Origin: Octopus bimaculoides
Taxonomy: Eukaryota
DNA: 46,821 nt
Direction of reading: 5' to 3'
NCBI RefSeq assembly: GCF_001194135.2
Contig: NC_068990.1
Coordinates: forward strand, 8,664,984-8,711,804
The notes under the pieces were generated by a model. The model was given only the letters and a program-made list of their open reading frames with translations. It had not been told where the DNA came from and made no database searches. The translations under genes were made by a program, and so were the position numbers. The stretch's first letter is position 1. Every line of letters begins with the position of its first letter. This document shows, piece after piece, positions 5,542 to 30,463 of the stretch.

Positions 5542-6795
5542 TTAAGTCAGTCGTTTTTTGCCCTGTCTTCCTGCAATAATTTTTATTGAATTAGCAGTCA
5601 ATCCGTCAAGGAAAGATGTGGAAGACTGCCTGATTGGTAACTGATAATTATGTGACATATTGTTCGACATTTTGCCATTTCTCATGCTGAACTTCTTGGT
5701 CTGCTGCTGATAATGAGGATTTGGCAATGAAAAGAAAGTATGATCAATAGACGGTAAGCTAGATATTTTCTTTTGTATAGAGTCATTTTCATTTATTTCT
5801 TCTTTTATTTCACTCCAAATTCTAGAAGATATATTTGCTTTATTTCTTTCTTCACTTTTTCTCACTTCTTTAACGGTTTTGCCTTTTCTTTTGGATCCTC
5901 TACTCAGTACTTTTAGCTTGTTCTTCGTAGTATTTCCTTCTTTGGCAGTGTTATTTACAGATTTTTTGGTATTTTCATTATTTTTTCGAATGACAGCCCC
6001 TGATGCAGTCATTTGCTGTCGAATCATAGTCATTGCAAGTGCCCTTAAAGAAAGCACTTTCTTTGGTTGTGTAGTCTCAGAGTTTATTTCTGTATCCAAT
6101 AATAAACTTTGAATCAGAGCATTTTTGTCACGAAGAAGCTGGTTCTTCAAATAGATATCTTTTTTCAAGTTTATTATATTCTCATCTGAACGAGAAACAA
6201 AATCTTTATAAGCATTTACAACACTTGGTGCATTTTGCTCGTGTGGACAAAAACCCATATGTGCTAAAATCCATTCATTTCCCTGTTGCATTTCTGTATA
6301 GTGTTTTTTAATTTCTTTGAGCTCAAGAAACGATCTGTGAAAATTTTCAAAATCTTCCCACAGGAATGCAAATTCATTTTCAACTAAGGCAATTTCTTCT
6401 CTATCTTTTGTTCTCGGTTTCAGTGATATAGTTTGGGAAATGCATTTATGAATATTCCGAAGAAGACTTTCAGCAAATCTTAATTTGCCTGCGATTCGAT
6501 CTTTTGTGGATTCATTTGCATGATTGGACCGGATTTGTATCAATAGATCTTCTGTGTGTTTCGCTTTTAAATTGGCAATTTCTTTTTCAAAAGCGTTTAT
6601 TTTTGATTGTAGATTACAATATTCAGTTTTGTACTGTTCGGTTATTTTTTTCAGTTCTTCAATTTCGGTATTTTTGGCATTGAGAAGGACTTTGTATTCA
6701 TAAAACTGTTCCAGTTGTTGATTTTTAACTTCAAGCATCTTCTCTTTCTCAGAATTCTCTTTCTTCCATGCATACATTAATTTTAATTCTTTAAC
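5542..6795 (-). CDS. Terminal coding exon (417 aa + stop) of a CARD-coiled-coil protein gene
   Basis: 1.3 kb stop-free frame in AT-rich DNA. Acceptor ttttatgttctctttttcttttaag|GTTAAAGAA with AG at 6797-6796, phase 0. The N-terminal part is E/K/Q/L-rich with heptad character (VKELKL...EIEELKKITEQYKTEYCNLQSKINAFEKEIANLKAK), followed by a K/N/S-rich tail. The first 20 codons of the listed ORF are the intronic polypyrimidine tract. Confidence 0.85.
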   Translation of the reverse strand, partial: VKELKLMYAWKKENSEKEKMLEVKNQQLEQFYEYKVLLNAKNTEIEELKKITEQYKTEYCNLQSKINAFEKEIANLKAKHTEDLLIQIRSNHANESTKDRIAGKLRFAESLLRNIHKCISQTISLKPRTKDREEIALVENEFAFLWEDFENFHRSFLELKEIKKHYTEMQQGNEWILAHMGFCPHEQNAPSVVNAYKDFVSRSDENIINLKKDIYLKNQLLRDKNALIQSLLLDTEINSETTQPKKVLSLRALAMTMIRQQMTASGAVIRKNNENTKKSVNNTAKEGNTTKNKLKVLSRGSKRKGKTVKEVRKSEERNKANISSRIWSEIKEEINENDSIQKKISSLPSIDHTFFSLPNPHYQQQTKKFSMRNGKMSNNMSHNYQLPIRQSSTSFLDGLTANSIKIIAGRQGKKRLT

Positions 6796-8325
6796 CTTAA
6801 AAGAAAAAGAGAACATAAAAGAATCGTAAAATAAATTAAACGTGGGTGGAAGCATTAGTTTAGCACTACTTAAGTATTAAACAATTTGGCAGAAGTATTA
6901 ATGCTATTTATATTTATAGTTCTTGCTTATACATTTAACAAGTAATTTGTGCTATATTTATATATAACACATACACACACACATTTATATATATCGCAAC
7001 AAGACCCATCATCTCACGATAAAATAGTCCACATGGTACAACATGATTAATCCTATAGAGCACAGCCATTAGAGTGGCTTGATTGTAGCCTCGAAAGGAG
7101 GACCCTCCTTAAAGAGTCTTAGTAGATTATATCGACCCCAAAAATGTCACTCATCTACCTTGCACATCGAACTCTATATGCATAAGAGCATAATATAAGT
7201 AACAGCATAAGCATATAAACACACATTGTTATACATGTGGTATAAGACAAGCAAAATTCGACTAAAATTGACCATAATTATAGTAATAGAAACATCAGAA
7301 TATTTGGAGCAACCGAGTGAGCTGTAGCTTAAGAACGTTTATTATGCTTAAGAGCGTTTATTATGAAAATGGATATGCCGGACATTATCCCACGATAATT
7401 GCTCTCTAGGTCCCTGTTCATGGAATCAGTTCCGATTGCGTTTGTAATGTCTGGGTTGCGTTTGGATGATACGTGACAAGGAAATATTAGAAAGAGATGA
7501 AGCATCATATCAGATGCACAAGGGTATATGTTGATGTACGTGGTAGCAAGAAAGTCACTGATATATGGCAATTTTATATTCTCTAAAACTCATTAAACAT
7601 CATAAAAAAGCAGATTACAAATATATTGTTTGTATCATAGTTTAAAAGGTTATGCTGAAAAACAACTTGCCTGTTTCGTGTAAATATTGACGCAGTTTCA
7701 ATTGTATGACTCTACTATAAAATAAATTACATAAGCTTTTCAAAGAAATTATATTTTTCATACGAGCAATAGATAATTCGTTTACAAACGTTAAAGATAT
7801 GTCTTGTACAGTATCAAAAGTCTACCATCACTTTTCTGTTGCTAATCCACACTGAATTTATTGCTGTTTTTATCCTTCTGGCGTCAGTATAATAACTATT
7901 TTTTAAAAAAAATGTGAGTGGTTCAATCAAATATAAAATATCCTCACATAAATGCAAAATAAATACTAGTGGCACGCCATGAAATTATATTTAAGTGTAT
8001 ATATTTATGGATATTATTTTCTCCAGAACTTTAAGAAATCCTCTTTCTCTTTCATATAAACATAGGACCAACAGATTTCAAAAATAATTATTAAAAATAT
8101 ACGATACATCAAGAACAAAAACAAATATTCCTTTGAAATATAATCCAACTATGTTTAATATTTAACAATTTAAAATAAATTGAATTTTGTAAAAGATTGT
8201 GTTTCTAGGGGGAAGTAATTATACCTCATACCTTCAGTATTGTATTCCCATTCAAGTCGTCATAAAATAAAATAAAATGGCACAACATAACATCAATCCT
8301 AAAGATTATTAAAATGAAGGTATTT

Positions 8326-8422
8326 AAATGTGTGTATGTGTGTGTGTATGTGCGTGCGTGCGTGTGTGTGTGTGTGTGTGTGTGTGTGTGTGTGTGTGTG
8401 TGTGTGTGTGTGTGTGTGTGTG
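8326..8422. repeat. (TG)n microsatellite running into a gap
   Basis: Directly visible. Confidence 0.97.
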
Positions 8423-28782: not shown

Positions 28783-29400
28783 ACGAGGGGGCGACCCAGA
28801 AGAAACAGGAATTTTGCAATATTATTTTATTCACCTAGTTTCACTTGTTTAAACTTTTATCGCCTTCAAAGTATTCTACATCTGAAACAATGCACCCGTC
28901 CAAGCGCGTTTTCCACTATTCGAAGAAGGGCTGCAACCCTTGTGAAATGATGCCTTTTAACGCCTCCGTCGTTTTTTTCTCCACCTCTGGCAAACCTTCT
29001 TCCGGATCAACATCCACCTGTTCTTTCATTTCACGAGAGGCATTCAGTCGTAACCGCTTTTGATCTTCCTTGAGCAAGCGAGGTACAAATTTTGTTGTAA
29101 CTATTTTCATTCGCAATCACTCACTCAAAATTCGTCGGCAAAAGTTTCAGGACGCACCAGCCATAGCAATAAGCACGCCAATTGTTCGGTGACAGTTCTC
29201 CAAAATCAGTTCATGGATTTTCTTTTCATTCGTTCGGGATGTCGACGGACGCCCTGAACGGCCTTGTAAGCTGTTTCAATCATGAAAATTTTTTCGGACG
29301 CCGTTTTCCCCGGCTGAAAACAGAATTTCATGGAAGCATGCTGTTCCTTCGTTTCAGCCATCACCAAAATTGACGAACAGGGGAGAGCACTACAAAACAA
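28783..29400 (-). mobile_element. Internally deleted mariner element
   Basis: N-terminus MAETKEQHASMKFCFQPGKTASE; KIVTTKFVPRLLKEDQKRLRL..S.EM; then a direct jump to the C-terminal EVEKKTTEALKGI...FE*WKTRLDGCIVSDVEYFEGD, and a TIR-like end acgagggggcgacccagaag at 28783. The catalytic core is missing. Confidence 0.88.
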
Positions 29401-30324
29401 AGACCCACCACATGACAGTATGAGTATGACCGAAGCCGACGACACCGGTCGGCAGACTGAGGCTTGAGGATAGCATCAAGTGGTTGTATATGTGTGTGCC
29501 TCTGACTTTGTGCCCTAAAATGCTCTCTAGTAAGTGACTGAAACAGGCGAAAGATAAAAGATTATACAGAAATAATAAAGCTTCTTTGTGGGCCATATAG
29601 TCTCAACGGGTCTGTTTGAATGTTTCCTGTGACGTATATATTGTTTCCTGGACCATCCGTTGGACGAACACTCAATTTTACTGGCTCAGTGAATCGGAGT
29701 AATGCAAAATGAACCGGCCTGCTATATATAGAACAAGAGCACAAAAATATTCACTCCTGCATATTTGTTCTTTGTGTGTGTGTGTGTGTGTGTGCGTGCG
29801 CGCGCGCGAATATATATACATGTATACACACAAATATAGCAAATCTTGAATTGAAGGAACAGTTTATATCTATACGACTAATTGAGATGTATTATTTTAC
29901 TGTTTGTTTTCAAGATAGACTTAGAAATTATCGTGCGACTAGTTTATAGTTTATTATATTTATAGCTTATAGCATAATATATTATGTGGTTGCATGAGAA
30001 CCGAAATTTCTTTGTTAGACAAAGGTTGCGCAAATTTTCACCTTAAGTGTAGATATTATGATAATAGATAATAAGTCGACGTATTACTGACTTTATTTTG
30101 TCCTAAATTACTTTATATTGTTTTAAATTATTTTTTATGGCAATATTCCATTCTTAGTGAAAATTTGATGAAAATATAACCAATTTCAGAATGAGATGCG
30201 TGTGTGTGTGGTGGTGGGTTATGCAAACAAAGTGAGTATCCGATAAGCAAGTTAGAGAAACGACACCAAAATGAAGGAAATATATTTAGAATACAGTTGA
30301 TAAAAAAAAAATTATTCAAATAAC

Positions 30325-30463
30325 CTTCGTCTCTCAGAAAATCTGCCACAAATGTGTGACCACAGATCTGAAGCACGTCACAGAATTTATGATATGATTT
30401 CTTCTCTCTGATACATAACCACTCGATAAGTTTAGTAACTTTTTCTTGCTTGCTGTGGGATTC
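30325..30463 (-). CDS. Coding exon (139 bp) encoding the C-terminal half of a CARD/death-fold domain
   Basis: Strong acceptor ttttcttttcgtgtttgcag|GAA and GT donor GAAG|gttatt. ESHSKQEKVTKLIEWLCIREKKSYHKFCDVLQICGHTFVADFLRDE fits the CARD helix 4-6 pattern (K..KLLD.L..RG..AF..F...L...G...LA..L). Confidence 0.75.

Follow-up and report, generated by a model that had tools for sequence, protein, structure and literature searches.

When caspases or NF-kB are switched on is decided by CARD scaffolds. The systems closest to the gene treated here are the CARD-CC proteins (CARD9; CARD10, CARD11 and CARD14, which are CARMA3, CARMA1 and CARMA2; and invertebrate CARD-CC), the CARDs of Apaf-1 and caspase-9, CRADD (RAIDD), which is the CARD and death domain adaptor of caspase-2, and the spiralian CARD-prodomain caspases of caspase-2/9-like type. 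CARD-CARD pairs usually join CARDs of related type, such as those of Apaf-1 and caspase-9 or of RAIDD and caspase-2. Apaf-1 has been reported lost in molluscs, annelids and brachiopods, which have kept CARD-caspases and CRADD, the latter as a separate gene in molluscs (PMC11463336), and APAF-1 was found in platyhelminths by Horkan et al. We analyzed a stretch of 46,821 nucleotides of Octopus bimaculoides contig NC_068990.1 (hereafter, the window). On the evidence of its sequence, it holds the 3′ three of the four predicted coding exons of an intact gene, the product of which, of about 546 amino acids (aa), has a CARD followed by a long coiled coil. RefSeq already predicts this gene in the sister species Octopus sinensis as an uncharacterized protein; therefore, we do not present the locus as new. 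The new finding is that the octopus gene is part of a Spiralia-wide CARD-coiled-coil family, which is separate from CARD-CC and is mislabelled in databases.

The family shares with CARD-CC proteins an N-terminal CARD (residues 1-93), a long coiled coil (116-252), a non-globular tail, a CARD9-like size and, likely, the use of a coiled-coil oligomer to present CARDs. However, its CARD is of another subtype, with negative profile scores in both directions, and the YPxL[FY]..[IV]T linker of CARD-CC proteins is missing. The best matches of the family CARD in both sequence and structure are the Apaf-1 and caspase-9 CARDs that make up the apoptosome CARD disk, and, as in Apaf-1, the CARD starts at residue 1. 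In contrast to Apaf-1, the family has no P-loop or WD40 repeats, nor does it have the NB-ARC domain that comes after the CARD in Apaf-1, CED-4 and Dark; one long helix follows the CARD, and oligomerization would use this coiled coil instead of a nucleotide-driven ring. CRADD gives the second-best match among solved CARDs (21 bits) and is likewise an adaptor without an enzymatic domain, but it has a death domain where the octopus family has a coiled coil. The spiralian CARD-caspases possess the nearest non-family CARDs (47-50 bits); their Peptidase_C14 domain is not found in the family, and we regard them as candidate partners rather than relatives of the whole protein.

Structure of the octopus gene

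The part of the gene in the window comprises the following features:

30325..30463, minus strand: coding exon 2 of 4, phase 0 to 1, residues 46-91 of the 546-aa ortholog; CARD helices 4-6 with the family-invariant motif FC..L...G..F.ADFL.DE (72.5 bits, family profile positions 49-96).
27415..27527, minus strand: coding exon 3 of 4, phase 1 to 0, residues 92-129; linker and short helices joining the CARD to the coiled coil (27.0 bits, profile positions 95-135).
5542..6795, minus strand: last coding exon, phase 0 to stop (TAA at 5544..5542), residues 130-546 (402.7 bits, profile positions 133-538).
27528..30324, minus strand: GT..AG intron of about 2.8 kb with one gap of undetermined bases (N-gap; 28421-28600), microsatellites and a short open reading frame (ORF), 29206-29445.
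6796..27414, minus strand: GT..AG intron of about 20.6 kb with seven N-gaps, microsatellites and a C2H2 zinc-finger ORF fragment.
30464..46821, minus strand: part of the intron upstream of exon 2, without a match to exon 1.

The three exons join in frame (phases 0-1, 1-0 and 0-stop) into 1506 nucleotides, that is, 501 aa plus TAA. They lie exactly where a preliminary description of the window had placed three minus-strand exons with AG/GT sites and joining phases, and, as that description also stated, the ORF list contains both small exons solely as parts of longer spurious ORFs (30128..30469 and 27382..27762). Exon 30463..30325 is preceded by the acceptor ...TTTGCAG (wider flank ...GTGTTTGCAG) and followed by the donor GTTATT; exon 27527..27415 is preceded by ...CATTTCAG (wider flank ...TTCATTTCAG) and followed by GTAGAT; and exon 6795..5542 is preceded by ...CTTTTAAG (wider flank ...TTCTTTTAAG). 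This last exon encodes the long coiled coil, then a middle region that is helical and conserved, and a Lys/Asn-rich tail that is disordered. A 437-codon open frame in DNA of 35% GC that has matches in 264 representative proteins at E<=1e-3 is not a product of chance.

The spliced peptide corresponds to residues 46-546 of the O. sinensis RefSeq protein P0001 (uncharacterized LOC118764868, 546 aa), with 478 of 501 residues identical (95.4%) and no indels. When the whole window was searched in six frames with a hidden Markov model (HMM) of the family, exactly the three exon segments matched, and all else scored below 3 bits. No further coding exon was found within introns 6796..27414 or 27528..30324 by this alignment and search, and therefore none is concealed in the N-gaps between the three exons. 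None of the 13 N-gaps in the window reaches into an exon; intron 27528-30324 contains one of them, intron 6796-27414 contains seven, and the remaining five are upstream of 30463. ORF 29206-29445 in the smaller intron has no Pfam match.

The ortholog P0001 begins with 45 further residues (MNNSQKDILRKYIGFLAQNIIWTNDLCKEMVCQDLLTNSMMEDIK), which form CARD helices 1-3. No match to this first exon was found in the readable window by tblastn (word size 2, E<=10) or by the six-frame HMM search. Of the CARD that had been ascribed to the window exons, helices 4-6 are thus encoded there, but helices 1-3 lie outside the readable sequence, which leaves half a CARD. According to its record, the O. sinensis gene covers about 397 kb, and in the gene of the clam Mercenaria, exon 1 is followed by the longest intron (9.8 kb); therefore, the octopus exon 1 is most likely situated beyond position 46821. 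Alternatively, it may be placed inside gap 31754-32060, 33618-34048 or 45513-45815.

The Mercenaria ortholog (P0005) has four coding exons (residues 1-45, 46-about 94, about 95-134 and 135-571), and its intron positions after residue 45, after FLRDE and before VKE are common to the octopus gene. At the clam locus (L002; Mercenaria mercenaria CM038765.1, 10001-22768 and 27496-32768), the whole gene takes up only 12.8 kb, compared with 25 kb for the three octopus exons and about 397 kb in O. sinensis; the neighboring gene, on the opposite strand, encodes a NUFIP1 domain. For annotation, the octopus introns are very long, repeat-filled and gap-ridden.

A 2.3-kb genomic contig from another octopod (L001; run SRR11869394) carries the large exon with equal length, no indel, the same stop and an identical acceptor (ttcttttaag, directly followed by GTTAAAGAA). 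Between this contig and the window, the ratio of nonsynonymous to synonymous substitution rates (dN/dS, Nei-Gojobori) of the large exon was 0.40 overall and 0.28, 0.21 and 0.86 in its successive thirds. The values of 0.21-0.28 in the helical two-thirds indicate that the helical part is under purifying selection; the disordered tail, in the last third, is nearly unconstrained. A megablast search of phage genomes with the large exon was negative and is uninformative.

In the octopus protein, P0001 residues about 395-450 (window about 5830-5995, minus strand) form a Lys/Asn-rich segment (..KNKLKVLSRGSKRKGKTVKEVRKSEERN..) that is probably disordered; its bivalve counterpart is a conserved coiled-coil stretch, DVKHENR.KDTRIKH.E.E..KLKARI.ELE. 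The basic cluster in the octopus segment resembles a nuclear localization signal.

Fold of the protein and its family across Spiralia

The AlphaFold2 model of the P0001 monomer, computed with a 12-sequence family alignment as input, folds residues 1-93 into a six-helix bundle with a predicted local distance difference test score (pLDDT) of 81-91. The helices are 3-11/13-19, 24-32, 38-45, 50-63, 68-78 and 82-93, the first of them kinked or broken at residue 12. Short helices follow, and then one unbroken helix (116-252), about 137 residues long, in which pLDDT reaches 94; further helices at 272-308, 321-368 and 376-431 are of lower confidence, and residues 432-546 are disordered. A crude heptad score was highest at peptide residues 113-168. 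The coiled coil proposed in the preliminary description is borne out by this helix and the heptad signal.

When the model was compared with the PDB by Foldseek, the matches were CARDs only, led by those of Apaf-1 and caspase-9, with target-normalized template modeling (TM) scores of 0.82-0.87, root-mean-square deviations of 1.6-2.0 Å and 22-23% identity; CARD9, CARD11 and BCL10 were absent from the top 50. A PDB search with the single sequence P0001 returned noise only, and a profile was needed to find CARDs. The family profile matched the Apaf-1 CARD at 27 bits (E 1.8e-5, profile positions 1-93), RAIDD at 21 bits (E 1e-3) and caspase-9 at 19 bits (E 3.5e-3); its other PDB matches were generic coiled coils, and no CARD9, CARD11 or BCL10 chain appeared at E<=10. 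In Pfam, P0001 and the relative P0003 yield CARD alone, with no NB-ARC, motor or CAP-Gly domain. Their CARD scores (PF00619) are 23.2 and 21.9 bits, respectively, where the gathering cut-off is 23.9, and several bivalve members bear a precomputed PF00619 match. The spliced window peptide alone has no Pfam match, because it carries just half of the CARD. With exon 1 of the ortholog added, the Pfam score, the Apaf-1 match, the six-helix model and the Foldseek scores agree with the domain's earlier identification as a CARD.

When 1.84 billion representative proteins were searched with the family profile, 264 matched at E<=1e-3 and 38 at E<=1e-30. The 577-aa relative P0003 (32% identity) leads to full-length homologs in Mercenaria, Mactra, Mya, Potamilus and Sinanodonta. 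In the family alignment, the members compared (P0001, P0003, P0005, P0026, P0046, P0048, P0058 and others) are collinear over their full length; the most invariant stretch, FC..L...G..F.ADFL.DEE, falls in CARD helices 5-6, and the middle region is well conserved. The named molluscan members come from scallops, mussels, the pearl oyster, Aplysia, Babylonia, Haliotis, Gigantopelta and Nucella, and those outside molluscs from the brachiopod Lingula (several paralogs), the nemertean Tubulanus, the annelid Owenia, the orthonectid Intoshia and the rotifer Rotaria. All sampled members with the full architecture are spiralians. Therefore, of the suggestion that the gene encodes an uncharacterized, possibly mollusc-specific adaptor, the uncharacterized CARD and coiled coil stand, but the restriction to molluscs does not.

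Members of the family either bear uninformative names in databases or are labelled in RefSeq as myosin-9 (Aplysia), CEP290 and CLIP1 (Lingula), restin and liprin-alpha-like (Haliotis), AKAP9-like (Gigantopelta) and ERC2-like (Mercenaria). Since the names vary by species for proteins that align over their full length, it is coiled-coil composition, not orthology, that lies behind them. In Mytilus galloprovincialis, two of the models have ribosomal protein L17e fused to them; these fusions and the contradictory names are annotation errors, and the family members need new names. Our literature searches by accession and keyword, in an incomplete library, found no publication on the family. In P0065, a protein of 1134 aa from a Logan contig, nine separate stretches match the family CARD region, which suggests a tandem multi-CARD protein.

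Nearest CARDs, putative role and rival explanations

In the search of 1.84 billion proteins, the best profile matches outside the family reached 47-50 bits in proteins of 370-545 aa. All eight of the nearest non-family proteins scanned with Pfam were caspases with CARD and Peptidase_C14, the named ones from the bivalves Mactra, Sinanodonta and Dreissena, and two amphioxus matches scanned were CARD and death domain proteins. Counting caspases among the CARD-only matches by a QACxG regular expression gave 3 of 22; the expression was too strict, and the count was disregarded. In a neighbor-joining tree of 40 CARDs, 13 of them from the family (100 columns, 200 bootstraps), the family CARDs stood loosely with those of CARD-caspases, Apaf-1 and the amphioxus CARD and death domain proteins. 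We do not claim descent of the family CARD from Apaf-1 or a caspase prodomain, the neighbor-joining sister group having 10-16% bootstrap support. Because the nearest CARDs outside the family belong to caspases, and CARDs of related type usually pair, a CARD-caspase is the first candidate partner.

Overall, we favor the reading that the protein is an oligomeric CARD scaffold that recruits a CARD partner, and we consider this reading, taken as a whole, somewhat probable. The coiled coil would multimerize the protein and display several CARDs side by side. The clustered CARDs would then bind, by homotypic CARD-CARD contacts, a partner that has a CARD of its own, and induced proximity would lead to its activation. 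The best candidate is probably a CARD-prodomain initiator caspase (caspase-2/9-like), CRADD or BCL10 being less likely; within the scaffold reading, a caspase partner is more likely than BCL10.

Several observations weigh against this proposal. The Pfam CARD score of the octopus protein falls narrowly below the gathering cut-off. The assignment of the CARD subtype is weak: invertebrate BCL10 CARDs reach 13-20 bits against the family profile. In the neighbor-joining tree, both the monophyly of the family and its link to the caspase and Apaf-1 CARDs have low bootstrap values of 10-16%. The AlphaFold2 monomer model has a predicted TM score (pTM) of 0.25 and is silent on stoichiometry, and oligomerization and the CARD partner are purely inferred. 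Lastly, the tail, with its dN/dS of 0.86, evolves almost neutrally, and in octopus it replaces a coiled-coil segment that is conserved in bivalves.

The same structural evidence would apply to an inhibitory decoy, in which the CARD sequesters a CARD-caspase or an adaptor and the coiled coil anchors the complex away from the activation site, in a way resembling ARC/NOL3 or CARD-only proteins, and sequence alone cannot separate activating from inhibiting. However, known CARD decoys have no long oligomerizing helix, being either short or made of a CARD paired with an acidic tail, and multimerized coiled coils usually raise the local CARD concentration, which favors activation. We regard a decoy as possible but unlikely.

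A further alternative is that the octopus gene is the cephalopod counterpart of CARD9/CARMA, that is, a diverged CARD-CC nucleating BCL10 filaments upstream of a MALT1-like paracaspase and NF-kB; we judge this to be very unlikely. The order of CARD, coiled coil and short tail is the same, and the lengths are 546 aa and, for human CARD9, 536 aa. The available part of the supplement of Staal et al. 2018 (PMC5978004) holds CARD-CC sequences of human, frog, acorn worm, oyster, Capitella, Nematostella and Hydra and BCL10 sequences including one of O. bimaculoides; thus, in that part, a BCL10 but no CARD-CC is listed for this octopus. The octopus BCL10 scores 20 bits against the family profile. In a CARD-CC profile search of a 5.8-billion-protein collection, 2946 candidates were scored, and among the matches listed, all of which were <=335 aa, no octopus or other cephalopod protein was named. 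Neither were members of the CARD-coiled-coil family among these listed matches, which did include oyster and Pinctada 'CARD11-like' proteins and vertebrate CARD9/11.

Against such a counterpart, the family HMM was negative for all eight genuine CARD-CC sequences, those of oyster and annelid included, and gave 26.6 bits for the Apaf-1 CARD, 21.5 for RAIDD, 13-20 for invertebrate BCL10s and 0.3 for human BCL10. Conversely, an HMM built on residues 1-200 of CARD-CC scored BCL10 at 34-71 bits, RAIDD at 35 and Apaf-1 at 27, but most family members were negative and none exceeded 20 bits. The neighbor-joining tree recovered a CARD-CC clade with 84% and a BCL10 clade with 87% bootstrap support, and all 13 family CARDs fell outside both. 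Additionally, Pinctada imbricata carries both P0054 from the CARD-coiled-coil family and P0196 from CARD-CC; therefore, the two are separate genes. The PDB profile matches, the Foldseek top 50 and the missing linker, all given above, point the same way. Judged by its sequences, the family is distinct from CARD9/CARMA. The preliminary description had drawn the CARD9/CARMA comparison while claiming no orthology to CARD9. That caution holds, given the negative HMM scores and a CARD-CC clade free of family members; the comparison itself is sound for architecture but not for sequence and CARD phylogeny, which set the family apart from mollusc CARD-CC.

The RefSeq names (myosin-9, CEP290, CLIP1/restin, liprin-alpha-like, AKAP9-like, ERC2-like) would suit a structural coiled-coil protein of cytoskeletal, centrosomal or vesicle-tethering type, whose N-terminal helical bundle has no death-fold signaling role, but this is highly improbable, given that the names are inconsistent between species for proteins aligning full-length, that Pfam yields CARD alone and no motor, CAP-Gly or other domain of the named proteins, and that the most invariant stretch of the family sits in CARD helices 5-6.

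Returning to the oligomeric CARD scaffold, its possible significance lies in the distribution of Apaf-1. The CARD-coiled-coil family is present in molluscs, an annelid and a brachiopod, that is, among the groups reported to be without Apaf-1. For these groups, the question is what activates their CARD-caspases besides CRADD, and the family is a concrete candidate. We speculate that the family could be a Spiralia-specific caspase-activation platform, a coiled-coil apoptosome in which a CARD disk of the Apaf-1/caspase-9 type is assembled without an NB-ARC ring, but because the resolution of CARD subtypes is weak, we regard this specific form as quite unlikely. Alternatively, the family may be a second CARD signaling hub beside the CARD-CC/BCL10/paracaspase complex.

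Repeats, gaps and transposon relics in the window

Most N-gaps in the window are flanked by simple repeats, some of which translate as SLSLSL runs; examples are 8423-8669, 16380-16520, 19094-19849, 25619-26131, 26488-27223, 33618-34048 and 45513-45815. Owing to the repeats at their borders, the gaps look like assembly failures at microsatellites rather than structural breaks. Two trinucleotide repeats lie outside the exons: one at 96-405, downstream of the gene, translates as poly-Leu or poly-Ile, and one at 21371-21601, inside the large intron, as poly-Val.

Within the 20.6-kb intron, an 82-aa ORF at 26142-26390 (plus strand) encodes a C2H2 zinc finger (27 bits) and begins at the edge of N-gap 25619-26131. 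It is probably a piece of a repeat element or of a truncated gene, the remainder of which would lie in the gap. The intron upstream of exon 2 holds two transposon relics, both fragmented into short ORFs: a long interspersed nuclear element (LINE)-type endonuclease fragment at 44988-45329 on the minus strand (Exo_endo_phos, 25 bits) and the end of a DDE_3 (Tc1/mariner-like) transposase at 44624-44863 on the plus strand (20 bits).

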